Shown: positions 11,919 to 61,300 of the stretch, piece by piece
Layout: every line of letters begins with the position of its first letter
Position numbering within the stretch: the stretch's first letter is position 1
Source: Mytilus californianus
Taxonomy: Eukaryota
Direction of reading: 5' to 3'
Assembly: GCF_021869535.1 (NCBI RefSeq)
Contig: NW_026262671.1
Location: 6,572,001 to 6,636,000, forward strand
DNA: 64,000 nt
Notes under the pieces: model-generated
What the model saw: only the letters and a program-made list of their open reading frames with translations
Told to the model about the DNA's origin: nothing
Database searches by the model: none
Translations under genes and position numbers: made by a program

Positions 11919-12781
11919 ATGGTTATACTAGGTAATTAAAACTTTTATATCTTCTGTTGTATATATATATATATATATATATAAATAGCCTTTCTGGAAA
12001 AATAAATTGCAAGGCTTTGATTATTTCCTGCTTTCGGAAATTCCACTTTCATTCATATATATACTGATAATGTTTTATAGCATACAGATTGTGTGATATT
12101 GTAACACCTATATGCTTCAAATTTTATCTGATCATGACGATTGACTTTTACTTAGACCTTGGATGTACTGTTCTGTTAAATGTTTTTGAAAAGGTGTTTT
12201 GTTGTGATAAAAGTAAGAACTACATCGAACTCGACCACGAATTAAAATGGAAAAGACGTATTTTATTGATTCGTATTACATTTGGATTAGTATTTAACAT
12301 TGTTGTTTTTATAACTGTGTGTGTGGTAAATAGAGAAATATTTATAGTCGGAAAGGCTGCTCTTGGATTGTTTATAACTATTGTGTCGTTTACTGTGATA
12401 TCATATATTGCTATTGAAGTAGTAGTATGGCTTATGATGTATACTGATGGTGCAAATGTTAATCACTCACAAATTTTGCTCGGTATGATATGTTACAGAA
12501 TATATGAAATAGAGTTTGATGTGTTGGTGTATTTCTACAGTCTAGTTTTATCAAACTGGAAAATAACAAAGTTTACAACCGCTACAACCGTGTTAGGTTG
12601 TTTAGATATAGCTATAAATATCATCACACTTGGAAGGAATTGTTATGACGCGATAAAGTTAGATAACAGTTCATGCAGACTTATTGCATTTATTATTATA
12701 CTCAGTTTATTGCTATCACCAGTTGTAGCAATTGGTTTATTGATGTGGATGATACTTATGAGAAAAGCAGTTGGACGGTAA
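11919..12781 (+). CDS. Uncharacterised ~5-TM membrane protein, copy A; predicted join(11919..11931,12156..12781), 212 aa
   Basis: ATG GTT ATA CTA G|gtaatt donor and gattgacttttacttag|AC CTT GGA acceptor give a phase-1 join, MVILDLGCTVLLNVFEKVFCC.... Exon 2 is open to TAA at 12781 with five hydrophobic segments. The same acceptor context is kept in paralogs B and C. Confidence 0.8.
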
Positions 12782-12790
12782 ACGATTTAA

Positions 12791-15700
12791 GAGGGGGCGG
12801 ACAGTTTAAAGGGAGACATGCAGAGAGGGTGCGGGAGAAAAGAGAGAGGGGGCAGAAGAAAGGAGAGAAGGGGCAGGAGAAAGGAGAAAAGGGGTAGAAA
12901 AAGGAGAAAAAATGTATATTAAAATTATTAAAATTTAGCTGAAAAACAATTATCTTATTAAATTAGTTAATAAAAAGCTTCAAGAAAGTGCTAACAAAAG
13001 TAAAATAACAAAAATACTGAACTCGGAGGAAAATTAAAAAAAGGAAAGTCCGTAATCAAATGGCAAAATCAAAAGCTCAAACACATCAAACGAATGGATA
13101 ACAACTGTCATATTCCTGACTTGTTACAGATATTTTCTTATGTAGAAAATGGTGGACTAAACCTGGATTTATAGCTAGCCAAACCTCTCACTGGTATGAC
13201 AGTCGCATAAAATTTCATAAAATGTCATAGTAACGAAAGCGACCTCATAAAAACTCCGAGCGTCGTCACTAATTCATTACGATCTCTCATATACGGAGAA
13301 AGACTAAAAACTAACAATTTCCAAAATTTTATAGTGAGTCCGTGCAAGTATAGAGACACATGTCACCATCCTTGTTTTCAGATAAATTGCTTCAAAGTTG
13401 ACCGATATGCATACAATTTGGCAGATAAAGGATGACGTTACTGAGTAAAGAGTAAAGTTATTTTTACTCAGAGGTATTGAAAAAATATGTAACGGGATCT
13501 GAATCGTGTTTGTTATTTTGTTCTCACTCCCTTGTCTGGTTTCGTAAATTACCTATTAATTCTAATGATTTAATTTTATTTCGAACTAACTGGGTGCACA
13601 TTCAGCTTAGAAAAAAATATCTTCAACTTAACCCTACCAAACTAGACAAAGATAATGCCAACACTACTTCCATGCATGGATAAATTGCTCCAAAAATTTG
13701 ATTCAGTAAACAGTGATTTTCAAGTACAATTTGAATTGATTGATTTGAGGTTGCAAAATGTCCGGTGGCAAATATTTCAGGCATGTTCAGGACGACACAA
13801 TACAATTTGAAATAGTTGTGTCTAAAAGACACATTTTTAATGCAGCCATCAGAAAATGGTTACTAATAAAACATTCCGTCGGTTGTAAAAGTGATATATA
13901 TAATAATACATATTTTTAAGATAGTACATGTATATACAATGTATGATGTAAACGTGTGGGTTGTGTGTAGACAAACCTTGCAAACTGTATTTCAAAAATA
14001 CATTTGAAAAGACAAATTTCAACAATCTGTCATTTGAGAAAAAATATACAATAAAAAAATCCTGAGAATATGGACAATTTTGGTATATATATATATACTA
14101 ACAACAAGTACATAATGTAAAGTTGAAGCTAAAAAAAATATAGCACTAAAAAATAAGTTGTATAAACCCTTAGCTATATACTAATGAGGGACGGGCGGTC
14201 AAATTTACACGGGTAAAACAAAATATATACTAAGCGTATATGATTATGTTCTGACTATTTTACAAGGCATTTGGTGACAAAATATATTTTTCAATAAGCA
14301 GTTCATTGTGGAATGTAATTGGGAAATCTCAATTGTATAGCATGTCCAATTCAAACAACAAAACACACCCATCCCTGTACACCCAATTGTAAATTAACAT
14401 GAATCTTAATCAAAATGGTGTTAAAATGTCCGTTTTTATGCCCCTCAACTGAAAGTTGGGAGGCATATTGTTTTACACCAGTCCGTACGTCCGTCCGTCT
14501 GTCTGTCCGTCTGTCAGTTCGTCCCATTATATAGTTATTCTGCATAACTCCTCATACAGTTTGAATCCTAGGAAGTTTTCACTTTGCCTATGTTTGTACA
14601 TATATTGAAGGTGTACATGTGGTCAGGGTTTTGATTTTTATTAAAATTTGCTCTTTTGGGAAATAGTTGAACTTTGTCATTTTTGGGGTATAAGCGGTTA
14701 AATGTTATAGTTATTTTAAAATAACACTTTGCATATGCGGGAGCATCAATTGTGACTCCCAGACACAATACTATCTCAAAGAAAGTCCTACATTGACTTT
14801 GTTATAATACAATTACTTCAGTGTGGAGTGCGGAGGCATCACTTTGTCTAGCTTCAGTTTGTTTCTGTCGTTTTAAGAAATAAAGGTAAACAAACATATC
14901 TCTTTAAATTTATTTTTTTTTTGCGTTCGAAGCGCTTTTCTGGATTTACCTTTATCAAAGCACCGTTTATTCATTTATTGGTTGGCCACTGTTTTTTAAT
15001 GAATCGTGTGATTGTAAATTTCGAGAAATAATTTGTTTTGAAATACGGAATTAAAAGAAAAATATGTAACTAATTTTATTTCATCCAAAAGGGTGCACAT
15101 TAAGTGTTGATATCTTAAAATGTGAAGCCTTAGTTAACTTTTTCCTCATTCCGATGTTGCTGTCCCGTGTAAACTGCGCTCATACGATAACAGTGTTGGC
15201 AATTTATTTTTTACAAGCTTCCGCAATCATATTTTCTGTACAGTCCTATAATATTCAGAATCTGGTTACATTTGAACATAGGGAAAGTTATGCGGCAAAA
15301 AAACCAAGTTCAAAGACAATTTAGTTATTCTTCTTTGTTAATTCCCCTCCAACAAACCATGTTCTGCCTGATTTTCCGCGGCTGCTTGTACTATGCATTT
15401 TCGCCAAATTATATCCAATATTCTTTTCAAAATGATTTTTTTTTCTATTTTGCAAGCAGCGTTTTTCGGCAACCATTATTAAAAGAATGAGTTTCTTGGC
15501 GAAATTGCACCAATAGTGGCACAAAAGTTCAGTGTATTTTCACACATTATCCTGCGTTTCTATAATTTGGATTTATACTTAAAAAAGAATCATCGGGAAA
15601 CGGCGTGCATCAGACTTATAAAATTCAATGAAAACATACAGCTTAAAATTATATAAGTCAGTGAAAAAGTTATTGAGGTTCTTGGAGTAGAAGAAACAAC

Positions 15701-15883
15701 ACTTCTATCTTGTGAAGGGATAAGACAGGGACGAGCCATAAAAAAAAGGCATTTGATCGATTAGTTTTTCATGTTTTAGGGCGGGAGTCAAGAGAAATGG
15801 GGCGGGAGAAAGGAGAAGAGGGACGGAAGAAAGGAGAAGCGGGGCGGTAGAAGGGAGAAAGGTACCCCTGTCTGCCCCCTCGT
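12791..15883. mobile_element. Probable non-autonomous TTAA-target (Kolobok-like) TIR element with nested repeats
   Basis: Left end ttaa|gagggggcggacag; right end ctgtctgccccctc(gt)|ttaa. Purine-rich ggggcgggagaaaggagaa-type subterminal repeats lie near both ends (12800-12910, 15780-15860). Right junction is imperfect. Confidence 0.5.
14432..14760 (+). repeat. Bivalve HINE/pearl-like non-autonomous element with (CGTC/TGTC)n microsatellite
   Basis: tttttatgcccc...gggaggcata short hairpin followed by gtccgtacgtccgtccgtctgtctgtccgtctgtc. Family assignment is from recalled architecture only. Confidence 0.55.
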
Positions 15884-25702: not shown

Positions 25703-27511
25703 CAGCAGTCCTTAAAAAGCAGACCGGAGGTCTGGTCTACCAACGACAAAGTTAACTTGCTTGTCTGCTTAAAATGTCCCAAGTTAACTTGAAAAGCAGT
25801 CAACAAGTCTGCTCAAAGGTTACTTTGTACAGGTTAGGACCGCACCCATCTGTAACAATAGAGAATGAAAAAATCATGTATTTTATCGTAAATTTTAGTA
25901 TTAAGCTTCCCGTGAAAATATAGATATCAAGATCTAGAAAGGACATGTTCATTGTTAGTATTGGCTTTTTAAGGTAGATTCCAGAAGATACATCTCTTTA
26001 ATGATCTGAATTCGTCAGTGTACAAAGGTACACATAATTTGCGTTACCATATTTCTATATATGGCAAACTTTCTTAAACGACCGTGTTCTGGATTTTAGT
26101 TCGTATACAGGTATACTTGGGTTAAGTTAAGATTCTACAATATATGGATCTCTATCCAACTTATTCTTCAATGACAATTTTCTTTAGAATGGCGAAAAAA
26201 AAACTGCAGTTTGAATGGCCTACCTTCGTCTTATGACGTTGATTTTGTCATGTTTGTCTGCTGTTTTATAGGCGAACGTCAATCTCATTTTTAAGATACT
26301 TGCATGTGTTTTGTGATCCTTTACAGGTGAACAAGATAAAATCTCGTAGAACGTGTCTATAGCCAGTCTTGGATTCCAATTAAACATTAAAAAGTGAGGA
26401 TTTTATTCTATACTTTCATGTCTGGTTGCATTGTAAGAATGGATAAGAGGTACTTCATAGGTTCTCTAAACTGATTTCTTATCTTTCTTTTAAGTGCTTA
26501 GTATGTTCAGAAGTGTCTAGTTAACCGCTAACACTGTCCATTGCCGCTTTTATATCACCGTTAAACATCTAATTTTTCAGTCGTTGCTGTATCCTAGATA
26601 GTGCATTGGCAACCTGCTGCTGAATTTCAAGTCGTATTTAGAAAGAAAAGCGACGTCGTCTATCGTCGCTCAAACAAACACACATGTCAAATGATTATTT
26701 TCCATTTTGACTTCAAATTTACTGCTATATAGATACTAGTAAGATTAGATTGTCACCGCCGATTATAGAGCTAAATTTCTTTTTAATGGTTCGGTTACAT
26801 CCTTTCCAACCCTTGTAAGCTTCGGCTTGCATTTGCAATTACTCTGACATCAAGTAAGGTTTGGCTAGTATAAACATTACCATACACATCCACTTAATTA
26901 TCAAATATCTGATTTGGCCTTTGTTTTAGGTACGTGACTATGCTTTTGATAAAACTACAGATACATGTCCGTTAATGGTAAAAAAAATCAACTATTACTG
27001 TACAAAATATGCATGATATTTTATTGAATTATGCATGTTATGTTAGAGCAAATTTAGCTCTCATTACACAAATATAAATAGCTACCTATATGATAATTTC
27101 TTTTTCTTTCGTATATCCTCTTTTTGCATTCAATGTCATAATTAGAAATATTTTTTTGTGATATAATCATATCCTTTAATGCATGACCTCTCGATCTCTG
27201 TGTTGATTTCTTAGTATACCATTTCTAAAAAAATTGAATACCGTTTAAAACCAATTCAATAATTTGTAAAACATAAGGATGCATTATTGTCGTTTCAAAA
27301 GAATATTTAAGGTAATTCAATATTTAAAATCTTCTTTTATATATATATTTTGTCTATTCGGAAAATATATTGAAAGGCTCTAATTATATCCTGCGTTGGT
27401 GATTTCCACCGTCGTTCATTACATTATGTTGATAAGTTTGTATAGCATACCCATTTTGGGATAATGTAACATCTGTAATTTAATCTAACAATGAATTTGA
27501 CCGTTATTTAG

Positions 27512-27995
27512 ACCTTGGATGTTCCTTTCTGTTAAATGTTTTTGAAAATGTGTCATGTTGTGGTAAAAAATAAGTCTCCATTGATCATGAACTAAGTGAT
27601 TATAAAGGAAAAAACACGAATTCAAATGGAAAAGACGAATTTTCATGATTCGCATTACATTTTGACCTATAATTAACATTGCTGCTTTTATAACTGTGTG
27701 TTTAGTGAATAGAGAAACATGTTTAGATAGAAATGCTGCTCTAGGAATGTTTATAACGCTTGTGTCGTTTACTGTGGTATCATATAAAACAATTGAAGTA
27801 GCAGTGTGGCTTCGTATGACTTTAGTGCAGTGAATCAGATGGAGAAGAAGATATGTTGTATTATATGATATTTTACAGAATATATGAAATAGAATTTGAT
27901 GTCTTGTTTTGTTCTATAGTCTGGTTTTATCAAACTTGGAAATGAGTGAGTTTAAAACCGCTACAACTGTACTTGGTTGCTTAGATATAGTTCAT
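27512..27995 (+). pseudogene. Membrane-protein family copy B, frameshifted and 3'-truncated
   Basis: Acceptor ttatttag|accttggatgttcc; ttttacagaatatatgaaatagaatttgatgtc; accgctacaactgtacttggttgcttagatatag. A degenerate donor aag|gtaatt lies ~200 bp upstream, as in copy A. Confidence 0.85.
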
Positions 27996-28460: not shown

Positions 28461-29642
28461 TTATTACATATAATGGAGTAATATCATATTAAAGTTTGTT
28501 AAGAACATTATTTTGATATCAGTTTTAACTTTGAAAATAAATTACAATATGTTTCACATTCAAACATAATACATTTCGTCTTTGGTTGAAATCGTTATTG
28601 CTTTGTGAAAAAACAATTTTTTTCTTAGTTATTTGTTCTTAATTCAATAGATACAAGAAGATGTGGTATGTGATACAACTCTCCATCCAAGTCACAATTT
28701 TTAAAAGTAAACCATTATAGATCAAGGTACAAACACTATACCTTGTTCACGTACCAAACAACATTTTGGAAACACAGCAACGAACATATAGTCTATATGC
28801 CGATTACACTCAATTTCATATAATTCCTAAAATTTTGATTTTAAAATTCAAAAAGGTATTGATTGTTCTTTAATCAAGAATATACTATACTTCATAAATT
28901 GTATGTGGAATTGTTGTTAATAAGGAATTTACTTCTTTGTACTTTTATTTTTCAATTTTAAATCCCCATGATAAATTATTTTGGTTCCTCTATGATTGCT
29001 TTTTTTTTCATTTTTTCACAAATGTCAATAATCTTTTCCCAAACATTCATTTGATGATGATGTGCTCCTAATTTTCTGTAATATAGCATTCATGATACTT
29101 TGAATATGTACTTATTTCCATTGCTTCAACAAAACTATACACAGTTTGGTATATAGCAAAAATTAGTGACTGTGCACATGCTTTGCGTTCAATAACTAGG
29201 GTTATCCAATTCGAGAAGCCAGCCGACCTTTAATAAATAATAAATATGTTTTGCTACCCATATTTTATAGTTTGGGTTCGTTATATAACCATGCTTGTGA
29301 AAAACACTGACATGGTTTGTAGCCTTTTATTTAGATTAGGGTTAATGTTTTTCTTGGAATCTTATTGAATATTGTAAAGTTTACAATACAAGATGTTTAA
29401 AGTCATAAGTTTAATTTAGGACTTTATTCTTACAAGATCATTTGATAAATGCAACAATCATTATTACAATCTACGTTATAAAATGTATTGTATTTACAAA
29501 ACAAAAGGCTTATTTTTCATCGACCTAATCAAATAATTAAAATTAACATTAAGGATCTTCATTTGCCAATCGTTATATACTTCTGAAACATTCAGGTAAA
29601 TAAGAGTGTTAAGCAATCTAGAAACGATTGACTTTTGCTTAG

Positions 29643-30590
29643 ACATTGGGTGTTCCTTTTTATTAACCGTCTTTGAAAATGTGTCATGTTGTGGGAATGA
29701 TAAAGTTTCAAATAGTCAGAGCCCAAAGGATACAAGAAGAAAAAGACGAGTTTTATTGATTCATATAATTCGGATTAGTATTTAATATTGCTGCCTTTAT
29801 AACTGTCTGTGAAGTTAACAATGACATAATGAACGCTTCTCTGGGATTATTTATTACTATTGTGGTGTTTACTATGATAGCATATGTTGTTATAACAGTA
29901 TCGGTTTGGACTGCTCATGTTGATTGCGACAAATCGTTGTTAGACCACATGATATTTTACAGACTTATTATGCCTATTAATAGTCTTTAATAAATGCACA
30001 TTAGTGAGGGAGTATAAAAATTCAAGGACATCTGACTGTTTGACGTCATTGATCATTTTCATCTTTCCAAATAAAAGTTAAATTTGTGAGAATTTTGTAA
30101 TTGTACAATTCAATTTATCACGTTTCACACTTTAACTTTCTCATTTTATATTTCCGTTATAAACATTTCACAGGAAAAAACAATAAACATGATCAATGAT
30201 TCATATGTCGGTACAATCATATACCCTATCGGTAAGCCGAGTACTTGTCACCACATTTGACTTTTGAAATTATGAAAAGCACTAAGAGCGTTTTAAATTT
30301 TAATCTACATTTAGAAAATATTTATGTTTTAGTTCTAATCTACAGTCTTTATTTGGGAAAGAACAGAGTTCACAACAGCTACAACTGTACTTGGATGTTT
30401 TGATATAATTCTTAATTCTATTTTACTAGGAAGGAATGTGTCTGACTTAAAAAATAAACAAAATGCAATCTTGTTTATTATTTTTGGTATATTACTGGCG
30501 CCGTTAGTACCATTTCAGTTTCTTATTATTATGATAAATAGGGAAGCTGCCCGCGTGCTGAGTTTAAACGATCACCTCAGAATAAAATAA
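29643..30590 (+). pseudogene. Membrane-protein family copy C (second subfamily), split by an ~340-bp insertion
   Basis: Acceptor gattgacttttgcttag|acattggg; DIGCSFLLTVFENVSCCGNDKVSNSQSPK. Homology breaks at ~29968 inside the YRLYEIEFD codons and resumes at ~30310 with ...ttcacaacagctacaactgtacttggatg. Confidence 0.85.
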
Positions 30591-31889: not shown

Positions 31890-32010
31890 AAAAATACATG
31901 TCGGCAAGTAGGGACCACACTTAGTTCCAATTAAAATCTCGACCATCTTTTGCAATATCAATCCACCAAACTCAACAAATAAGTTGTCGATAAAAAAATA
32001 ATCATAGCAT
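31890..32010 (-). pseudogene. Short Penelope-like RT remnant
   Basis: Minus strand reads IDNLFVEFGGLILQKMVEILIGTK...LLADM, homologous to the RT at 35480-35580. Confidence 0.65.
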
Positions 32011-33639: not shown

Positions 33640-33818
33640 TTATGACCGGAACGTCTTCACTGTACCTTTGACATACGTTTTACATACGGGACATTTTCGC
33701 ATTGCTGGGGCACAATCTGTACAACATACGATATGTCCGCATGGTAGGAAAGCAACAGTAGAATCAAACTCCCTACAAACTTTACACTGTCGTTGTTCTT
33801 GTAGCTGTCTATTTTCTT
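33640..33818 (-). CDS. Terminal exon of an IAP/BIRC-like gene: C-terminal RING finger
   Basis: tttgattttag|AA GAA AAT (phase 1) gives EENRQLQEQRQCKVCREFDSTVAFLPCGHIVCCTDCAPAMRKCPVCKTYVKGTVKTFRS*, the IAP/Mdm2-type C-terminal RING pattern. No BIR exon recognised. Confidence 0.82.
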
Positions 33819-34458
33819 CTAAAATCAAACGAGAAAAATATGATGCAAACAAATTTAATTTAGCAATGAAAATATAAAAAAGAATTGCAGAACTCTAATT
33901 GTATATCAATCGTCATTATCGTTTCTGGAATTCTGAAAGAAACATATCTGATTACCTGCAATTATCTTTGAAAGTTACAAAATATTGAGTTATCAGCAAA
34001 ATAGCATCATTTATGTAAACGAGTGTGTAACAACGGTCTGTCTCATGGGTAATGTTGATAAAACTAAATTTGTTTTAGATTATTTGTGTCACAACTCAAT
34101 AGAGACGTTATTGCAGGTGACGTTTATCCTGTCGACGCAACATGTCTCGCTCTTTTTTGAAGTTCATGCGACATCCTGGTTTGTCACCTTGGTTTTTATA
34201 CTTAAACAATAATTAAGATTTTAACATCGGTAAAATACTGTTGGTCTAATGAATAATAATAAATAAAAATGTCGGAGAACACGGTTGTTTGTCAAAGGAC
34301 TTCCGATTGTGAGCTGAAAAATGTGTTCCAAAAATGACATAAAAATATGATTCCAGTAAAACAATCGATCATAAATTTTTTCATGAGTTTTAACAGTAAT
34401 TACTTTGTTGTCGATGCTTGTGTTACGTTTATTGTTTGAAATAATTTCACAACCATAC

Positions 34459-37020: not shown

Positions 37021-38868
37021 CTATTATTCGTGTGTTTCTCTGTCCGATATGTTCTCCCATTTATTTGTATTGTAGTCCTGTCATGCAATGTTGTCATTTT
37101 AATGTTATATTTAACATTGCCATAAAAGCGGGAGGTTTGGCATGCCACAAAACCAGGTTCGACCCACCATTTTTTTCTTAAAATGTCCTGTACCAAGTCA
37201 GGAAAATGGCCATTGTTATATTATAGTTCGTTTCTGTGGGTGTAACATTTTAATGTTGTGTTTCTGTTGTGTCGTAGTTCCATTCTTATATTTGATGCGT
37301 TTCCCTCAGTTTTAGTTTGTAACCCGGATTTGTTTTTTTCTCAATCGATTGATTAATTTCGAACAGCGGCATACTACTGTTGCCTTTATTTGATTGTTAT
37401 TGACACTAAAAACTGCTATCTGAAAGCATATGATAAAAATATGGTGATGAATTAATCACGAAAAATATTCCAACAATTTATGACATTTCGTTTTGTGAAT
37501 AATTATATGATTAATAGTCCCAATGTAAATATCTATATTCTAGTATATCATAAAATAGGACGGCGGAACAAGCTTTGGGAAATTTGTAGATGGGGAAACA
37601 CGAACTATGTCAAAATACAGAAAACTCCAGAAACTAGGAATGTCCAAAAATATGGGAATGAGAGAAGAGGAAACTTTATATTAAGGAAGTTATGAGAGAT
37701 GGCAGTTATTGTCGGGCGAAACGTGCTTGTCAGATTAGTGATTAATTATAAAAAAAAGATGTGGTTTGATTGCCATTGAGACAACTCTAAACAAAAGACC
37801 AAATGGCACAGGAATTAACAACTATAGGTCACCGTACGGCATTCAACGATAAACAAAGCTATAAAAAGCCCCGACATGACACATGCAAAACAATTTCATG
37901 ACTGTTGAAATGGAAAGTTTTATATTCATGGGGATGGGTGGGGGTCACTTCTGGCGTGGTGCTTGAATTTAAAAAAAACATCCCCATTCATATATTGCCG
38001 AAGATCAATTATGGGATCCATGTTATGACTTATATATTTATATAGGAAGTTACCCACAGCCCCCCCCCCCCCCCCCGTGGTATAGGGGAGGCTTATTTTC
38101 CCTTTTTATTGATTATGTTGATTGGATATATGCTATATTTGAGGAAAAACATATGGTATATTAAATGTGGTATACGGAACATTCATGAGGAGCAATGAGT
38201 TGAAAGGATTGCACTTTAGGGGTATGGCATATTGGTAATACCCCCCCCCCCCCAAAAAAAAAAAAAACAAAAAAAAACAAAACAAAACAAAACACCAAAC
38301 AACCTAAACGAGCACACAACAACAACATTGAAAGAAATTGAAATATCTATTTAACTAACTCGACAGTTGCTTTATTTTGCATATCTTTAACAGGTTCATG
38401 TAAATATGTCATATATTAAAAGGTCATGCATATTGTTGTCAGTTATAAATCGAAATATTTCAGTAAATCCTAGACATTAACCTGTAAGTTGCTTCATTTA
38501 TTTATATTTTGCGTTAATGTCATCGTTTAACTGGACATTGTCGTTTTTGCACACAAAATACCATTGAAAAGCTTATTATTTTTCAGTTAATATTATCCCA
38601 TTTAGAAATTACGATTATCAAACAAGAAAAATGCCACTGAGTTACGATTATCCTCCCGAATTTTTCGAAGGTAATTTTCTAAGCGCTTAGACAATTATAG
38701 TGCACCGTTACGATTCAAATATGATGTAATTGTATAGAAAAACCTTGCAGCTGAGTTATTCCTGAAAACAACAGGCTACCTTTGAGAAAAGGACTGAATA
38801 GATTTTACCTATTTCTGCCGTCGACATATTGGGATCGTCGTAATTCCAGTTACGATTATCAGTTTAAC

Positions 38869-39497
38869 ATTTTTTGAAAATGTGTCTTGTTGTGGTAAAA
38901 GTAAATACTCCCTCGATCCCGAACTCAGTGATGATGAAAAAGAGAAAAACGAAATCAAATGGAAAAGACAGATTTTGATGATTCGTATTACATTTGGATT
39001 ACTATTCAACATTGTTGCTTTTATAACAGTGTGTGTGGTGAAAAGAGAAATATTTATAGAAGGAAATATTGCTCTGGGATTGTTTATAACTATTGTATTT
39101 TTACTGTGATATCATATATTATCATTGAAGTAGCATTGTGGCTTATTATGTATGCTGATGACTCGAGCTTTGACGATGTTTTAACAAGTATGATTTGTAT
39201 AGTATTTTACAGAATATATGAAATAGAATTTGATGTGTTGGTGTTTTTCTACAGTCTGGTTTTATCAAACTGGGAAATGACAGAGTTTACAACCGCTACA
39301 ACTGTACTTGGTTGTTTAGACATAGTTATAAATATTATCATACTTGGAAGGAATTGTTATGACGTGATAAAGTTAAAAAGGGACTCAGATAAAAAGAACA
39401 TGTTGCAATTATTGTTATTTTAGGTGTCGTGCTTTCACCTATAATAGCAATTGCGTTTTTGATTTGTATTGTATATGACTTTAAAAAAGTATTATGA
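38869..39497 (+). pseudogene. Membrane-protein family copy D, frameshifted, 5' end cut by a TIR element
   Basis: Overlapping ORFs 38882-39109 (SCCGKSK...WKRQILMIRITFGLLFNIV) and 38959-39423 (YRIYEIEFDVLVFFYSLVLSNWEMTEFTTATTVLGCLDI). Homology starts immediately after the TSD at 38863-38868. Confidence 0.88.
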
Positions 39498-41583
39498 TCG
39501 CATCTAAATTAATTAAGTTTTTAACTGAATAAATATCAATGTGTATATAATATTAATGTTATTGCTGTTGTTGAAATTGTAATCATATAGTATACCGTAA
39601 GCTTGTACAATGTGTTTTGCAACTCATCATGGTCTGTTCGAAATTGTTTAAAGTAAACCCCCTTAAGTTATATGTCATATACATTACTGTTGAATAACAA
39701 TTATGTTTTGTGTATTTTAAAGAGCAGATTTATATAGGTCGAATACGTGTTGAGTAAATAAAGGTTTTTAATAAATTTATTTCATTGCAGAAAGGTTATT
39801 GACAAGTTCTGAATATGCAATCGTCCTTTGTTGGAGTAAAACAATTGATATAAATATAATATAGTTACTTTATTCATCTTCTAAAATCATCTGCTCATCT
39901 GATCTTAAGGATGCACTGGGGTGAGGGTTTCAAATTTGTGTCAGATGTTCGGACTCCTGGTGTTTTTCCCTATGATACAAGGTAAAATATTTTGCTCCAT
40001 AACACCGATTTATCTTTTCATATAATATAAAAAAAGGAAGATGTGGTATGATTGCCAATGAGACAAATCTCCATAAGAGACCAAAATGACTCTGAAATTA
40101 ACAATTATAGGTCACCGTACGGCCTTCAACAATAACAAAGCCCATACTGCATAGTCAGCTATAAAAGGCCCCGAAATGACAATGTAAAACAATTAAAACG
40201 AGAAAACTAACGGCCTTTTTTATGTACAAAAAATGAACGAAAAACAAATATGTAACACATAAACAAACGACAACCACTGAATGACAGGCTCCTGACTTGG
40301 GACAGGCACATACATACAGAATGTGGCGGGGTTAAACATGTTAGAGGAATCACAATCCTCCCCCTTACCTGGGACAGTGGTATAACAGTACAACAAAAGA
40401 ACGAACTAAAAAAATCAGTTGAAAAAGGCTTAATTCATTAAATGGACAAAAATAATAATAAACAAAAGAAAAATATGACTTTATAGCTAAGAATAGGCCA
40501 CTTACCAAAATTTAAGTAGATTCTTGGTTTTCTTTCTTTAGACTTGAGACACAAATAATACCAATGCAAAATCAGGTAAAAGTCCGAGTCAGCTTTTTCC
40601 CGCCATATTTTAAAAATCGAATATCTCGAAAAGGAGCTCCATGACCTATCAATATTTTTACCTTATGTTTTTTTTAATTTATCATCTAATTACTACCACT
40701 ATTTTATTTCATTAATTATTGTAAATTTCACTGTTATTAATACATGTAATATCATTATTACAATCCTAATTTTGAACTCTATCCTATTTTTTGGAAATTT
40801 TTAGAAATATATATGTGACGTCACTTTTGTGCATCGATCTATTCGGCTAACATATAATACATTGTTCGGCTGTGCTGTTTTATGTGCTGATTTAGGTTGT
40901 TTTACGTATTCGTTTGTTTTTTGTAGTTAGTCACCAATTCGGTGTTAAGATGTATAGACGAAACACGCGTCTGGCGTATTACATTATAAGCCTGGTATAT
41001 TTAATAATTATTAGCTTGTCATAATGTTCTATTGTATTGTTTATTTGTGTGTGTCACTGATGGATGAGTCTAATGTAGACGAAACAAGCGTCTGGTGTAT
41101 TAAATTATAAGCCAAGTATCTTTAACAACTATTAGCTTGTCGTAATGTTCTATTGTATTGTTTATTTGTGTGTTTCTCTGTCCTTTGTATGTTCTTCCAT
41201 TTATTTGTATTGTAGTCCTGTCGTGTAATGTTGTCATAATAATGTTGTATTCAACATTGCCATAAAAGCGGCAGGTTTTGCTAGAAACAAAACCAGGTTC
41301 AACCCACCTTTCTTTCTCAAAATGTCCTGTACCAAGTCAAGAAAATGACCATTGTTATATTATAGTTCATTTCTGTGTGTGTTGCATTTAAGAGTTTCTG
41401 TTGTGTCGTTTTTTTCTTCTTATATTTGATGTGTTTCCCTCAGTTGTAGTTTGTAACCCGGAGTTGTTTTTTTCTCAATCGATTTATGAATTTCAAACAG
41501 CGGTATACTACTTTTACCTTTATTTATCCTTAACTAATGCTGTTCCGTGTTATATTAACAATTTAAAATTCTTGATTTATTTA

Positions 41584-42698: not shown

Positions 42699-43032
42699 AA
42701 ATTGGCATTTTAGTGAACTCTCAATCAAATGCTAATCCGCCATGACAATTGAATAAGCAGCATAAATTAAACGAAAATATAATCAACTAGTTGTTATTCA
42801 TTTCAACATGCAACAAATATAAACAAACATCATTCATGCATCGGATAAACAGAATTATTTTATATATAATCAAATTGTTCTAAAGCAGTTTGAAAAGAAT
42901 TCAAAACTATATCATTGCCAAGAAACGATAAATGTACTCCATCATGACTAACCAAAGATAAAAGTTTGACTTCAAAATCAGAATGAATTAAAGTGTAACC
43001 CCCCAGTTTTAATTAAATGTGATTTAACTTCC

Positions 43033-43323
43033 CTATTTGTACGTTTCCTGGTTGCATCCATTGCTTTTAAATCTTTTGAACATTTTCATTTCAACCTTGG
43101 TAATATGCTTGAAAAAATAATTTAACTTCCATTCACCATACGTCCAATTATATCTAGCATAAATTAAATATAAAATAAAAGTTTTTGCAGAGTTTACAAG
43201 TCTAATTTCATTGCCACCACAGTGAAGCAAAACAACATCTGGTAAACCCCAACCATGTATCACATTCTCTACTATTGGGACAAAATTATATAGTGACACA
43301 CCGGACATTCCTGCCCACATCAA
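43033..43323 (-). pseudogene. SGNH-hydrolase-like accessory ORF fragment of the Ngaro-type element
   Basis: WAGMSG...HGWGLPDVVLLHCGGNEI (GxN(D) block-like) downstream of the YR remnant. Hydrolase ORFs are known in some animal Ngaro elements. Confidence 0.6.
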
Positions 43324-45009: not shown

Positions 45010-45599
45010 GGTAGATTCATGGTATACCGCCATCTTGGATTGTACAATCGCAGTACACAATCGGTCTAGATCTTTGCCAAATCTGCAAATTTGGAGACAG
45101 ATAGGCAATTTATAAGTTAGACTGTTTATTTGATGAAAGAAAACTTGGTGATTTATTGCATTATTCAAAATATTTTAATAAATTCCAAATAATTGTGTTT
45201 TTAGAATCATTTTTTCAACTTGGCCATTTAAGGGGAGATAACTCTTTTAGTAAAAAATTTAAACTGGACTGATAGGGAAATTTTAATTTTTTACTTGTAG
45301 CAAGAAAACAAGTTCGGTTACACCATTTTTTCTTTTTATTTTCTTAAAGCATATTATAAAACCTATCTTCTCATATTTTATTTCAAAATTCTATCTCATA
45401 GATTTCTTTTTAAGCACAAAAATGTGTTTTTTCATGAACAATCTAAGCAAATTTGTGCAATTTCATACGACCCGTACCTTGAAAAATAGCACGGTGACCC
45501 ATACTTTTTATTATATTTTTGGAAAAAGCATAGAAAAATCATTATTTTGGCAAAGTATAAAAAAATTCTGTCAGAGGAAATGTATACCTATGATCTACC
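45010..45599. mobile_element. 590-bp non-autonomous TTAA-target element (Kolobok-like) inserted in the RT, unit 1
   Basis: TTAA|GGTAGATTCATGGTATAC ... GTATACCTATGATCTACC|TTAA. Empty site tttaacagag is present in unit 3 (50869-50872). Confidence 0.88.
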
Positions 45600-47943
45600 T
45601 TAACAGAGTTAAACCTTTCATCAATGAGGTCGTTAACGCTGCTCAATGGCGGATATGATAAATGGGTAATCAGACGAAAAACCTGATTTCTTCTTTGTTC
45701 TGTTTTTTTGTTTTTGTTTTTGTTTTTTTTTTTAACTTATCCAATAGGAGAATATCTAAGATTAGATATTCGTCTTTTACAAAAAGCACCTGCTATTCTT
45801 CATAATGATATTTCAGATTCAATCTTACATCTAGTTCCAATAGGATTTGACCAAACAGATTTTAAATTTTGATTCAAGTGGAAATCTTGGTTAATTATGA
45901 TTCAATCTAAATCCAAATTTAAAACCAATAAACAAAATTTGTTTGTCCTGTTCATTAGGATAATCTTAATTGTTCAATATTAATAGGTGAATGTCCTTTC
46001 TTCCAAATATCATATTTATCCTTTGACAATTCTGAAAGAAAAGTTAACTATACGTCATTTGATTAATTCTAGGGACGAAATACCTTGTGTTTATTGGTGG
46101 CCTATATCTATTTGTTGAACAAATGAAGGCCTGTTTTGTCGAAACTGGTTAGACATATGAGATCTGTTTTGGATAAACACTGGTGGCATCAATGATCCCT
46201 TATGAAAACCTTGGTTACTTTGTAAGCTATCAAATCTAACACATAAGACTGGATGTTGTAATGAACATTTCATACAGTTATGTCTGTAAAACACTGAAAT
46301 TTCTGACAATAACCGTTAAAGTTATAATCATAACAATGTCTTTGTAAGTTAGCCTGGCAGACTACAGGATTAGGTGTGCCTTGCAATCCCTTTACAATGA
46401 ATTTGAACTAAAGAAAGCCATCAATCTCAGACAACGATTTAGAGTGTTTAAGTGATACACTTAATCTCCAAATCCTCCCCTAAACATTTACAAACATTGA
46501 AAAATTAATTCAAGTTGTTTTAATACATCAACAGTAATAGGTTTTCTTTTATCAACTCTTTTACCAAGACGCTGCATACCTTTTAACATTATTTTCAAAA
46601 TAAATGATTTGCTATAATCATTTCAATTATTCATTTTCAACTTATGATTAATTTCTGATAGATATATTTTTGAAGGTTATAGGAATAACTATTTTTGAAA
46701 GATATGTAAATTAATCGTATGATTAACAGGAGGTGGCCAACTTTCCTCTATTCGAAAACAGGTCAGAAATTTATGAATGAATAGATGCATTTACATATAC
46801 ATCCATTGTATTTGAAGAAACAGATTGCTGTAAAAGTTTATTCACTTCATCTTTAAAGGTTCCAGAACTCCACTGGAATTGGATGTGGAAAATTGCTGTC
46901 AAGTGGTGCAGACATTGAAATTTCTGAAAATTTGCACGAGATAATGCATCAGCAATTGCATTGTCCTTTGACAAAATGTGAACAGCTTTAAACTGAAAAT
47001 TACCAATCAGTGAACAGTGAATAATTAAACTAAAAACGGACGTAACTAGTTAATATTTTTCTTGACATTTTGTTTAAAACATTCACTACTGCCAGGTTAT
47101 CAATGTGAAAAAGTATGTTTCTTGTATAATTTATCAAACCAGTGTTATTGGAATGATTTCAAAATATGTTATATCTTCAATTATTTCTGAACTATTCCAT
47201 TCTTTATGCCACTCAATTGACCATTAATATAAATTGTACACCTTTTACCTAATTCACAAGCAGTATCTGTATATAGTTCAAAATAATAAAATGATATCCA
47301 TCCTATATCATTTTAATACGAAATCCTATTATACTGTTCCAAAAATAATTTCCATATCAATAGATAAAAGTGAAACGATTTTGACACTTTGTCCATGGTC
47401 GAATACAACTAAACGCTCTTCCAGCAGGTATAGCCTTCGTGCAGAAAACTTATGAACCACATATTGACTGCAATTCTTTTAACGTTACTTTTTTCATGGC
47501 TTAAAAATTATTAATTCTGTTTCAAAGTTCTTCAATCTTTTCATGTGGAATTTAAACAAGCATATTAACAGTATCAATTGTAAGACCCAGATATTCAATC
47601 AGTGTAGTTGGACCTTCATTTTTTTTTTCATTTGCAAGTGAGACTACAATATCTTTGCAAATTTCATCATTCTGAAACATCAGTTGTTCACATTAATCAG
47701 AATCTGATTAGCCAACAAAATTAAAAATCTTCCAAATAGTGGTTTATATTATTTAAACCAGACTTATTTTTAAAACCAATTCAAAAGGCTAAAAACTTCT
47801 CAAATTTAGCATATGAAATTGAGCAGCCCAATGTCATTGCCTCGTCTATGTAGTATTCATCTACAATTTTAAAACCAAGTTAGTCAAAATCTCATGTATA
47901 AACCGGAAGTAATCAACAGCATTATCAAATGAAGAATATTTAA

Positions 47944-48533
47944 GGTAGATTCATGGTATACCGCCATCTTGAATTGTACAATCGCAGTACACAATCGGTC
48001 TAGATCTTTGCCAAATCTGCAAATTTGGAGACAGATAGGCAATTTATAGGTTAGACTGTTTATTTAATGAAAGAAAACTTGGTGATTTATTGCATTATTC
48101 AAAACATTTTAATAAATTCCAAATAATTGTGTTTTTAGAATCATTTTTTCAACTTGGCCATTTAAGGGGAGATAACTCTTTTAGTAAAAAATTTAAACTG
48201 GACTGATAGGGAAATTTTAATTTTTTACTTGTAGCAAGAAAACAAGTTCGGTGACACCATTTTTTCTTTTTATTTTCTTAAAGCATATTATAAAACCTAT
48301 CTTCTCATATTTTATTTCAAAATTCTATCTCATAGATTTCTTTTTAAGCACAAAAATGTGTTTTTTCATGAACAATCTAAGCAAATTTGTGCAATTTCGA
48401 ACGACCCGTACCTTGAAAAATAGCACGGTGACCCATACTTTTTATTATATTTTTAGAAAAAGGATAGAAAAATCATTATTTTGGCAAAGTATAAAAAAAT
48501 TCTATCTGAGGAAATGTATACCTATGATCTACC
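47944..48533. mobile_element. Same 590-bp TTAA-target element, unit 2
   Basis: Same termini and TTAA duplication at the orthologous position. Confidence 0.88.
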
Positions 48534-51500
48534 TTAACAGAGTTAAACCTTCATCAATGAAGTCGTTAACGCTGCTCAATGGCGGATATGATAAATGGGT
48601 AATCAGACGAAAAACCTGATTTCTTTTTGTTTTGTTTTTTTGTTTTTGTGTTTTTTTTTTTTTTAACTTATCCAATAGGAAAAAATTTAAGATTAGATAT
48701 TCGTCTTTTACAAAAAGCACCTGCTATTCTTCATAATGATATTTCAGATTCAATCTTACATCTAGCTCCAATAGGATTTGCCCAAACAGATTTTAAATTT
48801 TGATTCAAGTGGAAATCTTGGTTAATTATGATTCAATCTAAATCCAAATTTAAAACCAATTAACAAAATTAGTTTGTCCTGTTCATTAGGATAATCTTAA
48901 TTGTTCAATATTAATAGGTGAATGTCCTTTCTTCCAAATATCATATTTATCCTTTGACAATTCTGAAAGAAAAGTTAACTATACGTCATTTGATTAATTC
49001 TAGGGACGAAATACCTTGTGTTTATTGGTGGCCTATATCTATTTGTTGAACAAATGAAGGTCTGTTTTGTCGAAACTGGTTAGACATATGAGATCTGTTT
49101 TGGATAAACACTGGTGGCATCAATGATCCCTTATGAAAACCTTGGTTACTTTGTAAGCTATCAAATCTAACACATAAAACTGGATATTGTAATGAACATT
49201 TCATACAGTTATGTCTGTAAAACACTGAAATTTCTGACAATAACCGTTAAAGTTATAATCATAACAATGTCTTTGTAAGTTAGCCTGGCAGACTACAGGA
49301 TTAGGTGTGCCTTGCAATCCCTTTACAATGAATTTGAACTAAAGAAAGCCATCAATCTCAGACAACGATTTAGAGTGTTTAAGTGATACACTTAATCTCC
49401 AAATCCTCCCCTAAACATTTACAAACATTGAAGAATTAATTCAAGTTGTTTTAATACATCAACAGTAATAGGTTTTCTTTTATCAACTCTTTTACCAAGA
49501 CGCTGCATACCTTTTAACATTATTTTCAAAATAAATGATTTGCTATAATCATTTCAATTATTCATTTTCAACTTATGATTAATTCCTGATAGATATGTTT
49601 TTGAAGGTTATAGGAATAACTATATTTGAAAGATATGTACATTAATTGTATGATTAACAGGAGGTGGCCAACTTTTCTCTATTCGAAAACAGGTCAGAAA
49701 TTTATGAATGAATAGATGCATTTTCATACACATCCATTGTATTTGAAGAAACAGATTGCTGTAAAAGTTTATTCATTTCATCTTTAAAAGGTTCCAGAAC
49801 TCCACTGGAATTGGATGTGTAAAATCGCTGTCAAGTGGTGCAGACATTGAAATTTCTGAAAATTTGCACGAGATAATGCATCAGCAATTGCATTGTCCTT
49901 TGACAAAATGTGAACAGCTTTAAACTGAAAATTACCAATTAGTAAACAGTGAATAATTAAACTAAAAACGGACGTAACTAGTTAATATTTTCTTGACATT
50001 TTGTTTAAAACATTCACTACTGCCAGGTTATCAATGTGAAAAAGTATGTTTCTTGTATAATTTATCAAACCAGTGTTATTGGAATGATTTCAAAATATGT
50101 TTTATCTTCAATTATTTCTGAACTATTCCATTCTTTATGCCACTCAATTGACCATTAATATAAATTGTACACCCTTTACCTAATTCACCAGCAGTATCTG
50201 TATATTGTTCAAAATAAAAAAATGATATCCATCCTATATCATTTAAATACGAAATCCTATTATACTGTTCCAAAAATAATTTCCATATCAATAGATAAAA
50301 GTGAAACGATTTTGACACTTTGTCCATGGTCGAATACAACTAAACGCTCTTCCAGCAGGTATAGCCTTCGTGCAGAAAACTAATGAACCACATATTGACT
50401 GCAATTCTTTTAACTTTACTTTTTTCATGGCTTAAAAATTATTAATTCTGTTTAAAAGTTCTTCAATCTTTTCATGTGGAATTTAAACAAGCATATTAAC
50501 AGTATCAATTGTGAGACCCAGATATTCAATAAGTGTTGTTGGACCTTCATTTTTTTTTCATTTGCAAGTGAGACTACAATATCTTTGCAAATTTCATCAT
50601 TCTGAAACATCAGTTGTTCACATTAATCAGAATCTGATTAGCCAACAAAATTGAAAATCTTCCAAATAGTTGTCTATATTATTAAACCCGACTTATTTTT
50701 AAAACAAATTCAAAAGGCTAAAAACTTTTCAAATTTAGCATATGAAATTGAGCAGCCCAATGTCATTGCCTCGTCTATGTAGTATTCATCTACAATTTTA
50801 AAACCAAGTTAGTCAAAATCTCATGTATAAACCGTAGTTCATCAACAGCATTATCAAATGAAGAATATTTAACAGAGGTAAACCTTTCATCAATGAAATC
50901 GTTAACGCTGCTAAGTTAGCCTGGCAGACTACAGGATTAGGTGTGCCTTGCGATCCCTTTACAATGAATTTCAACCAAAGAAAGCCATCAATCTCAGACA
51001 ACGATATAGAGTGTTTTAGTGATACACTTAATCTAAATTTTCTATCATACGGGTAAACTCTGTCAAAATGTGCATCTGATATAAAAACTCTTATGATTAA
51101 CATGTATGTAAACAAGTCTTGTGCTAAGCTAGCATATTTTTGAAGAAGTATTTTTAAAAAAAAATTGCAAATGCTTCAGTCCATAATTCAATGTTATTTA
51201 TTGTATTGTCCTTTGAAGGGTAATGAGAAATGACAAGCATTCCATTTTTAACAGTAACACTCTGTTTCTGGTCCAAACTACTATAATATTGACTATTTTG
51301 TTGAAGAAGAGTACCAAAATCAACATTTTTACAATTCCTAATTTTCTCTATTATTTGCTGAGAAAAAATGATGTCAATTTCATAAGAACATGGTATAAAC
51401 AAAGGACAGTAGTATTTAAAGTATTACCCGGTTGAGCGTAAACTGCCGTAGTTTTCAGTTGTTTCTGAGGTGGAGGTTGATTATTGGGCTCCACAGGTTG

Positions 51501-52616
51501 ATCTGGTTGTTGAAGCTGCACGCCTTCTTTTTCCGTGTCTTCCTCTGTTTACCACTCGGACAACTCCTCAGGGACGGGTACCTGTTTTGGTGCTGGTGCT
51601 TCACGAGGAGCAGGTCGTTGAACCACAACGTTGTTTACCCTTGGTCTTAATCTCCGGCTTACTTCATTTCTTCTATTCTTTTATAAAATGAAGTCATTAT
51701 AAGTATATTGTTTTTATAAATATATAAAGATGTTATAATTTATGAAACATTACATTGATGCCTCGGCTGCATATAGATAAAATGCTCCGTACCTAAAATA
51801 TATACTATTATAAATGTGTATATAATGTACGCCTCTTAAGACATCTATAAGTGTATAATAACCAGCAGTTATTTGAACGGCAGTTGTAAATGCCATTACA
51901 TTTGTAATAATCGTGTGTTCCATAACATGATAACAGGTATACTATCATTATCAATTTATTGAATCAAATTTAAAGAAAGCTTTATATGCACAATAACATG
52001 CAGCAAACTAAACATCAGTTGTATTTATAATTAAATAAATGACGTCACATTTGTAATAATCGGGCCTTCCGTAACTTGAATAACCGGTATTTCAGTGTCA
52101 ATTTAATACCTGAATTATATGCAGGTAAAGCACGCAAATTAAAATAATGTAACTAAGCGTATATTTGTCAGCAAGCCTACAAAGGATTCCATAGCTAGTT
52201 AAACATGAGAATATTTATTGCTACTATGGTAAAATAGAAACAAAAACTTACCGATAAAAATACCTTGTTAAAGAACTGTGAATTAAATGCAACAACCATA
52301 AGTAAATGAAATGAATGGTAATAAATAAGCACATATATATATAAATCTAATTAAAGTGACATTAAACAATTCAATAATTTAATAATGAACGTGACGAGAA
52401 ACATATAATTATACGAACACATGCGAGCACGTGTTAAATTTAAAGTTACCCGTTTTACTTTATCGTCACAGAATTTCAACTCACAGGTAAAAAACGGTTT
52501 GCTCTTTAAATATAAACCAAATTATTATAGTGAATTAAAATGAATAAAAGGAAACATATCTAAAGTATAACGGATAAACTTAACCAACTTATCTTATTTA
52601 CACTCTAGTCCTATCC

Positions 52617-59334: not shown

Positions 59335-59378
59335 ACGCCAGACCCGTGTTTCGTCTACATAAGACTCATCAGTGACTC
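59335..59378 (-). ncRNA. Minimal type I hammerhead ribozyme motif
   Basis: GAGUCA-CUGAUGA-GUCU uaugu AGAC-GAAA-C acgg G-UC/UGGCGU. All core nucleotides present, 4-bp stem II, GUC cleavage triplet. Confidence 0.75.
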
Positions 59379-60018: not shown

Positions 60019-60133
60019 GATATGGTCAATTGTAGGTTGATATGGTCGATTGTAGGATGATATGGTCAATTGTAGGGTAATAGGGTCGATTGTAGGGTGA
60101 TATGGTCGATTGTAGGATGATATTGTCTATTGT
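60019..60133 (+). repeat. 20-bp minisatellite (gatatggtcgattgtagg[g/a]t), ~5.7 copies
   Basis: Direct reading. Confidence 0.93.
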
Positions 60134-60434
60134 ATAAACGAATGGACAACAACTGTCATATTCCTGACTTGGTACAGGCATTTTAAAATGCAGAAAATGG
60201 TGGAGTGTACCTAGTTTTATAGCGCTAAACCTCTCACTTGTACGACAGTCTCATCAAATTTAGAATATTGATAATGATGCGTGAACAAAACAAACAGACA
60301 CAATAGGTAAAAATCTCACAAATGAATGTAAAAAGTCTAATTCGGTAGGTCACATTCGTGAAAAGGGAACAGGATTGTAGTTACGACATAAGGAACATAT
60401 CCGATATCATCTATGTAACAGATATTCCTTAACG

Positions 60435-61082
60435 GTGAACCAACTCGTGATGATTTCAGCTTCCCAATGCTTCACTACTGTTTCACTAAAAGTTTCAAAT
60501 AGTCAGAGCCCAAAGCATACAAGAAAAAAAAGACGGGTTTTATTGATTCGTATAACATTCGGATTAATATTTAATATTGCTGCCTTCATAACTGTCTGTG
60601 TAGTTAACAATGAAATATTCACCGAAGGGAAGACTGCCCTGGGTTTGTTCATAACTATTGTAGTGTTTACTGTGATTGCATATATTGTAATTACAATATC
60701 GGTGTGGATTGATCAAGACGGTTCGTCGTTAGACCACATAATAGTTTACAGACTTTATGAAATAGAATTTGATATCTTAGTGTTGATCTACAGTCTTTAT
60801 TTGTCATACTGGGAAATAACAGAGTTTACAACTGCTACAACTGTAGTTGGCTGTGTAGATATACTTGTTAATATAATGATTCTTGGGAGGAATGTGTATG
60901 ACTCTGAAAAAAGAAAAGATGCAATCCTGTTTATTTTTTTCTGTATCTTACATGCACCAATAGTACCATTGGGGTTTCTTATTTTTAGGCTACATGACTT
61001 GTGGATTAATAGGAGCGAACCGTCAACGAGTGGATTAATAGGGGGCGATCCGTCGACAAGTACAAAACAATTGGAACAATAG
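60435..61082 (+). CDS. Membrane-protein family copy E (second subfamily), open frame with a foreign 5' end
   Basis: Homology to copy C starts at aaagtttcaaatagtcagagccc (~60498). Frame is open through YRLYEIEFDILVLIYSLYLSYWEITEFTTATTVVGCVDI to TAG. The family acceptor is missing; in-frame ATG at 60450. Confidence 0.55.
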   Translation: MNQLVMISASQCFTTVSLKVSNSQSPKHTRKKRRVLLIRITFGLIFNIAAFITVCVVNNEIFTEGKTALGLFITIVVFTVIAYIVITISVWIDQDGSSLDHIIVYRLYEIEFDILVLIYSLYLSYWEITEFTTATTVVGCVDILVNIMILGRNVYDSEKRKDAILFIFFCILHAPIVPLGFLIFRLHDLWINRSEPSTSGLIGGDPSTSTKQLEQ

Positions 61083-61194
61083 TAAAGATGACTTTGAAAT
61101 CAGGAAGTTCTGCTTGAAATATTGGATGGATGTATGGGCGTTGAAGATATTGATTAAGACATGACTGTGTAATTTTTTTGTGTCATTTTACAAA

Positions 61195-61300
61195 CTTATT
61201 CAATAGATTTTGATATATATGTGTTTTTTTTTCTACTATCTTGTTTTATCAAACTGGGAAATGACAGGTTTTACATCAGCTACAATGGTACCGGCCTGTG
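61195..61300 (+). pseudogene. Membrane-protein family fragment F
   Basis: tttttctactatcttgttttatcaaactgggaaatgacaggttttacatcagctacaatgg aligns with copy D tttttctacagtctggttttatcaaactgggaaatgacagagtttacaaccgctacaactg. Confidence 0.75.

Follow-up and report, generated by a model that had tools for sequence, protein, structure and literature searches.

Is a tandem array of small membrane-protein genes in the mussel Mytilus californianus, assignable to no known family, a working gene family, and if so, what might its product do? The array lies in a 64-kb stretch of DNA (hereafter the window; C91:6,572,001-6,636,000 of the genome searched, G+C 31%, no N present), which holds six copies of the gene, A to F, all on the + strand. 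We show here that these copies belong to a real family of small polytopic membrane proteins (~200-235 residues) with a restricted taxonomic range, and that the 450-kb cluster around the window is an expansion in M. californianus that evolves fast and consists mostly of pseudogenes. That the family is real and its intact members functional we hold with high confidence. Our best overall explanation, a genuine family whose members handle ions, is more tentative, and we put its probability at roughly 0.4.

Six copies in the window, one of them fully intact

A tblastn search of the 64-kb window with copy A recovers precisely the six + strand copies that an earlier note on this DNA had listed, with no other significant match. 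The matched spans are 12089-12778 (A), 27499-27989 (B), 29618-30551 (C), 38864-39387 (D), 60489-60986 (E) and 61191-61320 (F). Only five open reading frames (ORFs) of at least 130 residues occur in the 64 kb, and three of the five are family members. The state of each copy, judged by three-frame translation and by DNA alignment of the 5' ends, is as follows (CDS, coding sequence; TM, transmembrane helix).

12134..12781, + strand: copy A, intact single-exon CDS of 215 residues plus stop; full-length match to residues 1-215 with 0 stops
27491..27995, + strand: copy B, SLVLSNL-type pseudogene; multiple frameshifts and in-frame stops, 3' end truncated
29624..30590, + strand: copy C, KVSNSQSPK-type pseudogene; start ATG changed to ACG, frameshift early in TM1
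38864..39500, + strand: copy D, SLVLSNW-type pseudogene; 5' end gone, at least two frameshifts
60450..61082, + strand: copy E, open frame of 210 residues from the first ATG; KVSNSQSPK/SLYLSYW type
61191..61320, + strand: copy F, frameshifted fragment of ~130 bp, from the end of TM3 to TM4 only (YLVLSNWEMTGFTSATMV)

The copies had been described as equivalent, a view that does not survive this comparison: copy A alone is fully intact, E is doubtful, and the other four are pseudogenes. Homology in copy B stops right past the LDI motif, and a search of the window's own genome counts six TGA and one TAA codons in one of its frames. Copy C carries an insertion of ~390 bp (29967-30353) within the codons for YEIEFD, and homology in copy D begins within the N-terminal helix. 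In copy A an N-terminal amphipathic helix bearing Cys11, Cys23 and Cys24 is followed by the KWKRR stretch and then by five long helices.

Copy E is the ambiguous case. Its TM1-TM5 are intact and its open frame spans 210-215 codons, with TM-core omega (the nonsynonymous-to-synonymous rate ratio) of 0.17-0.34 against copy A and the paralogue L008. GTG stands where the ancestral start codon was (60435), neither the FYLD motif nor the Cys pair survives, and upstream of KVSNSQSPK the sequence is no longer homologous to the other copies. Copy E is thus either functional with an altered N-terminus or an early pseudogene.

Most of what had been seen in the sequence of the copies holds. The motifs GC...CC, KWKRR/KKRR, YR[IL]YEIEFD and FTTATTV[LV]GC[LV]DI are present in them, and paralogue comparison recovers variable loops and termini beside a conserved TM3-TM4 motif. 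The division into two types is real, with SLVLSNW in A, B, D and F (B being listed as SLVLSNL), KVSNSQSPK in C and E, and SLYLSYW in E; the types do not strictly alternate, the order 1,1,2,1,2,1 being an interleaved one. The birth-and-death character of the array is also borne out, since pseudogenes make up four of the six copies in the window and ~13 of ~20 loci in the wider cluster.

As a working definition, the family is marked by M-x(2-6)-FY[LV]D...C and [IV]R...G...N in the N-terminal helix and TM1, and by Y[RK]xx[ED][IV]x[FY]D and D[IL]xxN in TM3 and TM4. Copy A shows all four features and copy E the last three, and B, C, D and F show them in broken frames.

Two low-complexity tracts adjoin the copies. 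A GA-rich (purine) run at 12790-12900 starts 10 bp past the stop codon of copy A, and a 20-bp tandem repeat (19.5 copies, 86% matches) lies at 61461-61854, directly 3' of fragment F; its minus strand gives a repetitive ORF (…ISPYNPPYHPTIDHITLQST…).

A single coding exon

The gene had been proposed to consist of a tiny, 13-nt first coding exon spliced at 11931/12156 to one large exon. The coding part of this model is not upheld. A contiguous ORF opens with MTIDFYLDLGC at ATG 12134, and the proposed acceptor at 12155 falls within conserved coding sequence, its TTTTACTTAG being the codons for F-Y-L-D. The start M-x-x-x-FYLD is common to copy A and at least 15 other open paralogues, some of them 35-40% identical and on other chromosomes, and it also heads independently annotated proteins of M. 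edulis and M. coruscus. The N-terminus itself is constrained, with D8 >90% conserved, omega of 0.35-0.82 over the first 41 codons and an AlphaFold helix at residues 9-22. Because the conserved start is ATG 12134, the 11931/12156 junction would remove conserved coding sequence. The coding region is therefore a single exon.

The upstream signals are probably those of a non-coding exon and an intron, as judged from an alignment of the 250 bp upstream in six paralogues:

11919..11931, + strand: probable end of a non-coding 5' exon; conserved donor-like AG|GTAATT
11932..12080, + strand: putative intron in the 5' untranslated region; GT at 11932-11933, conserved TTTTATAG acceptor ending at 12080, (TA)n run inside

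A 149-bp intron in the 5' untranslated region, from donor 11931/11932 to 12080, would probably account for this conservation. Only in copy A would ATG 11919 remain in frame across the putative splice. Ahead of the conserved ATG the frame stays open for 21, 10, 18, 4 and 4 codons in different paralogues (4-18 outside copy A), and since it is this short in the other paralogues there is no conserved N-terminal extension.

A taxon-restricted family with a young local cluster

The genome searched comprises 1,651,950,171 bases in 175 pieces. It contains 62 matching segments with copy A as query and 70 with a 53-sequence profile, many of them full length and stop-free. These correspond to roughly 45-50 loci on at least 12 scaffolds, and most members lie on other chromosomes than the window. 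The local cluster spans ~20 loci at C91 6.505-6.956 Mb, of which only seven are open. One of its members occurs four times (C91:6750896, 6795893, 6846439 and 6918952), at spacings of 45-72 kb; three of these copies are open and 95-99% identical, and the first is broken. This set points to tandem duplication of large (45-70-kb) segments in the very recent past, or possibly to uncollapsed haplotypes.

Relatives beyond this genome were sought in several protein collections. An exhaustive profile search of 1.84 billion representatives returned 57 clusters at E ≤0.001, of which six are named, all as uncharacterised proteins of M. edulis, M. galloprovincialis and M. coruscus. A second, word-indexed protein search with the 53-sequence profile gave no further named relatives, and in a collection of 5.8 billion proteins the best match to copy A reaches 55% identity over the full length and 66% over a part. 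The divergent relatives P0061, P0066 and P0037/P0068 are 31-37% identical to anything in this genome, with which one of their contigs shares just a 170-bp repeat. At such low identity, the family extends past Mytilus.

The Mytilus proteins A0A6J8DJP0 and A0A6J8B7J4 (M. coruscus), A0A8B6HBC6 and A0A8B6EJE6 (M. galloprovincialis) and unnamed M. edulis products belong to the same family, with profile E down to 1e-93. They share the FYLD, IR..G...N, YRxxEIxFD and DIxxN motifs, and some are 1:1 orthologues of dispersed members. They differ from copy A in being at most 66% identical to it, and some lack TM5, carry long acidic tails or have an extra C-terminal domain.

Architecture varies within the family as well. 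Some members stop after TM4 and carry long acidic tails. In a conserved fusion subfamily, comprising L022:721-2079 on the minus strand (C1:54065004-54065615) and M. coruscus P0014, the exon that encodes the membrane module also encodes a C-terminal domain of ~220 residues, which has no Pfam match and in an ESM-Atlas feature search weakly resembles GDSL/SGNH-like hydrolases (0.92, few shared features). P0017 (343 residues) and P0052 (310 residues), both encoded on Logan contigs, apparently contain two membrane modules, the second recognisable by a ...LSNWNWT...LDIFRN... segment, and P0017 has two profile stretches. Given these variants without TM5, fused or doubled, the conserved unit is the N-terminal helix plus four helices.

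Purifying selection between species and decay within the cluster

Four pairs of orthologues, each matching a gene of this genome with one from another Mytilus genome or contig, are stop-free, are of equal or similar length, and give omega of 0.15, 0.19, 0.46 and 0.51 at synonymous divergence (dS) of 0.18-0.40. Such values indicate purifying selection between Mytilus species. In a quick maximum-likelihood tree most dispersed members pair with a close counterpart of another species, and the type-1 members of the C91 cluster, copy A included, form a clade of this genome only, with a Shimodaira-Hasegawa-like approximate likelihood ratio (SH-aLRT) support of 93.

Within the cluster, whole-gene omega between paralogues is 0.4-0.9, and between the youngest duplicates it is 1.7-1.8, with few changes separating them. 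Divided by region, paralogue omega is 0.17-0.65 in the TM1-TM2 and TM3-TM4 cores and mostly >1 in the TM2-TM3 loop (100-117) and residues 173-215, the two stretches where the alignment is least certain and where values >1 may be inflated. Copy A against its nearest paralogues has TM-core omega of 0.26-0.51. In simulation, a copy A evolving neutrally to 0.10-0.15 substitutions per site has only a 0.7-5% chance of staying open, indels not being counted. Taken together, the orthologue omega, the tree, the regional omega and the simulation support a family that functions and whose local expansion is young, evolves fast and is decaying.

The window copies, A and E included, could still be functionless by-products of segmental duplication, with only the dispersed conserved members acting. 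We regard this as unlikely. In its favour, four of the six copies are broken, E lacks its start and N-terminal motifs, omega is 0.6-0.9 between paralogues and 1.7-1.8 between the youngest duplicates (which few changes separate), and copy A has no close orthologue elsewhere. Yet copy A retains all conserved residues and an open 215-codon frame, a rare outcome under neutral drift, and its TM cores are constrained relative to the nearest paralogues. The lack of RNA reads on copy A also fits the by-product view, but it comes from one run sampled at ~6%, which says little on expression.

Highly improbable, in our estimate, is an origin of the gene as the ORF of a transposon or integrated virus. As such an origin would have it, the genes are intronless and multi-copy and lie amid many repeats, with fragments of reverse transcriptase and Tc1 close by; however, homology is limited to the CDS and ~250 bp upstream and ends at the stop codon. 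No terminal inverted repeats surround copy A, the only inverted repeats there being TA microsatellites, and the paralogues are 25-65% identical, with orthologues under purifying selection. A fold search for viral relatives and a sequence search for metagenome relatives found none, and the ORF has no transposase or reverse-transcriptase domain.

Predicted structure and conserved residues

AlphaFold modelling on 53 sequences gave a predicted local distance difference test (pLDDT) score of 88.3 and a predicted template-modelling (pTM) score of 0.84, compared with pLDDT 69 for a first model built on nine sequences. The model contains a helix at residues 9-22, followed by long helices at 32-65, 74-104, 111-139, 146-176 and 178-214. 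The description of the protein as having five TMs is supported in part: the five long helices and the N-terminal helix are present in the model, whereas hydropathy is strong in TM1, TM2 and TM5 only. TM3 and TM4, the best-conserved helices, are only moderately hydrophobic, as expected if they pack against neighbouring helices or line a polar cavity.

Conservation is concentrated within the helices. G51 and D129 are invariant; conservation is at least 90% at D8, R47, F80, Y121, Y135 and D158 and ~70-80% at N55 and N162. The loops measure 7-15 residues and contain no conserved glycosylation sites (sequons), which argues against a ligand-binding ectodomain and places nearly the whole protein within or against the membrane. 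Cys residues just before a basic stretch are typical of S-acylated cytoplasmic segments, and by this analogy the N-terminal Cys-cluster helix is probably S-acylated and on the cytoplasmic face.

A tentative ion-handling mechanism

On these features we propose the following mechanism. The conserved unit would comprise the Cys-cluster amphipathic N-terminal helix, the basic stretch and four conserved helices, of which the least hydrophobic, TM3 and TM4, would bear D129 and D158, with R47 and N55 on TM1. With conserved charges in the helices and almost no mass beyond the membrane, the protein would act inside the bilayer. It may be a subunit of a small oligomeric pore that conducts cations or protons, or of a channel-like regulator, and the fast-changing TM2-TM3 loop and fifth helix may tune partners or gating. 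As a mechanism read from sequence, a small cation or proton pore or channel-like regulator is possible, and we advance it tentatively; the earlier note's suggestion of a pore, channel or receptor was likewise drawn from conserved charges.

Several observations weigh against this interpretation. The omega of 0.6-0.9 between cluster paralogues also fits relaxed constraint. The fifth helix is wholly absent from some members, so that a five-TM architecture is not family-wide, and the charges settle the topology no further than the basic stretch that precedes TM1. The idea of a buried Arg-Asp-Asp site presupposes that R47, D129 and D158 are near one another in the model. The structural likeness to Orai and WeiTsing, described at the end of this paper, may be purely generic, with Z under ~13. 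In a ~6% sample of one RNA sequencing (RNA-seq) run that carries this species' label, zero reads fall on copy A. Logan contigs encoding relatives, considered as possible transcripts, were judged genomic, being colinear with the genome or bearing an apparent insertion without GT..AG ends.

Nearly as likely as ion handling is a non-conducting membrane organiser or adaptor of tetraspan-like kind (tetraspanin, MS4A/CD20, claudin-like or MARVEL-like), which would bind its partners through its helices; it too is possible, if doubtful. Polar residues would then brace the bundle, and the variable loop and the fifth helix would set partner specificity. The small size, the very short loops, the Cys cluster near the membrane and the focusing of variation in one loop, TM5 and the C-terminus all suit such a role, as do the adaptor-like long acidic tails or ~220-residue C-terminal domain of some members. 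The invariant and near-invariant Asp residues within helices, however, would be odd in a pure scaffold, and the large extracellular loop is absent. A few members give sub-threshold Tetraspanin and MARVEL matches, but the Pfam scores reach at most 19.8 against 32.1 bits and are spread over 51 unrelated families.

The ion-handling proposal can be taken further. The family might be a new small ion-conducting class with a buried Arg-Asp-Asp site and no structural relative, found in mussels and a few relatives, and its species-specific tandem expansion around the window might be under diversifying selection through host-microbe or self/non-self roles at mussel epithelia or haemocytes. We consider this extended version a long shot.

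RNA evidence around copy A

None of the indexed RNA runs contains copy A. Within 8000-13600, RNA-seq reads and Logan contigs cover 10805-11178 and 12862-13235 only. The reads there are partial and of 95-99% identity and therefore derive from dispersed repeats expressed or present elsewhere. An element at 12996-13215 also flanks other family loci.

A separate insertion was seen at locus L017 (C24:33106958-33110542), which holds a family gene. About 200 bp upstream of this gene, the genome has 961 bp that the orthologous contig from another Mytilus lacks. The ends of the insert are not GT..AG, TTA stands at both junctions, and it looks like a transposon insertion.

Genomic neighbourhood

Two neighbours in the window resemble genes of known type:

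8775..9563, + strand: TRIM-like open frame upstream of copy A; B-box-like zinc finger (8775-9200), then a coiled-coil-like segment; PF00643 at 16.8 bits, cut-off 24.1
33643..33894, - strand: IAP-type C3HC4 RING exon, of the type at the IAP C-terminus; PF13920, E = 6.3e-13, 48.7 bits

IAP-like genes are interleaved with the cluster, four BIR matches lying within or beside the 450 kb (C91 6.560, 6.561, 6.644 and 6.670 Mb). Such neighbours, with the IAP-type RING exon and the B-box-like frame in the window, the quick turnover of the family and omega >1 in its exposed parts, would suit the role in immunity or cell death that the earlier note had inferred. We find this reading unsupported and consider it quite unlikely: it is an argument from adjacency alone, in a genome where BIR has at least 150 matches and IAP genes are hence very common. 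Most members of the family lie on other chromosomes, and death-fold, TIR and other signalling domains are absent from all members examined.

The rest of the window holds further repeats and fragments. At 43000-51700 on the minus strand there are at least three tandem copies of a ~2.93-kb unit, which produce spurious tblastn matches 2934 and 2929 bp apart and ORFs recurring at 43923/46774, 44251/50115, 44295/47228 and 45287/48221. The ORF at 43036-43341 reads ...VVLLHCGGNEIRL..., resembling an SGNH-hydrolase block, with no Pfam match. Between copies C and D are reverse-transcriptase-like fragments at 35407-36039 (+ strand) and 31833-32084 (- strand), with the motif FVEFGG..IPMGTNC..LADLFLYSYE and no Pfam match at E up to 0.01.

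Significance

Mussel genomes contain large lineage-specific gene families, and genes are present or absent between individuals. Most such families have known folds (C1q, TRIM, IAP, antimicrobial peptides). The family described here has a helical membrane fold, predicted with confidence, and conserved charges inside its helices, yet it has no relative in sequence or structure, and it combines 1:1 orthologues on several chromosomes with a fast, pseudogene-rich tandem cluster. If any member is a channel or membrane regulator, the family would represent a new protein class and a tractable case of the origin, diversification and death of new membrane proteins. If none is, it would count as another orphan family. 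Annotation gains either way from the corrected gene model and from the assignment of each copy as intact or broken.

Comparison with known families and folds

The view that the protein belongs to no known family is sustained by the searches: Pfam, PDB sequences, PDB folds, viral folds and the ESM Atlas all lack a relative. Copy A matches no Pfam family at E up to 10, and copy E likewise has no real match. Across 53 members, 51 Pfam families are weakly matched, each by at most four members and none above cut-off, a scatter typical of hydrophobic noise. The family profile has no match among PDB sequences at E up to 10. With the pLDDT 88 model, Foldseek finds nothing at E ≤0.001 in PDB or BFVD, and the fold searches with the first model (pLDDT 69) are also empty, including that of the ESM Atlas, where the fold search was made with this model only. 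An ESM Atlas feature search with copy A reaches 0.76, under the useful level, and a JGI metagenome scan gave 211 pattern matches but no relatives.

Tetraspanin (PF00335) is weakly matched by a few members. P0042 and P0014 score 19.8 and 19.3 bits over TM1-TM2 (best E = 7e-4) against a cut-off of 32.1, and copy A gives no match. Membrane-adjacent Cys and polar residues within helices are common to both. Tetraspanins differ in their large second extracellular loop with CCG, which is absent here, the TM3-TM4 loop of our family averaging 7.1 residues and 0.06 Cys per sequence. MS4A/CD20 proteins are small tetraspan proteins encoded in tandem arrays, with exposed loops that evolve quickly. They offer a functional analogy only: the searches found no sequence or fold relation, and the loops of our family are much shorter. 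TMBIM/Bax inhibitor-1 proteins have seven helices, an Arg-Asp-Asp latch in their membrane helices and a Pfam model of their own. Here too the likeness is an analogy, of one Arg and two Asp in helices, and neither the Pfam model nor the fold matches our family.

An exhaustive structural comparison gives a top Z of 10.9, for a designed bundle. TMEM175 has Z 9.7, and de novo designed bundles and soluble helical proteins score as high as Orai and WeiTsing or higher; with this aligner, Z becomes meaningful for helical bundles near 13. The best membrane-protein rows are Orai (CRAC channel, 4hkr), with Z 9.8 and 149 residues aligned at a root-mean-square deviation (rmsd) of 5.0, and WeiTsing (8hf2), with Z 8.6 and 114 of 120 residues aligned at an rmsd of 3.0, both below the helical-bundle level of ~13. 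Sequence identity to them is 9-10%, with no Pfam or Foldseek match. Orai and WeiTsing are both four-helix subunits of small oligomeric cation channels; like the proteins of our family, they are small, have short loops and carry acidic residues in their helices.

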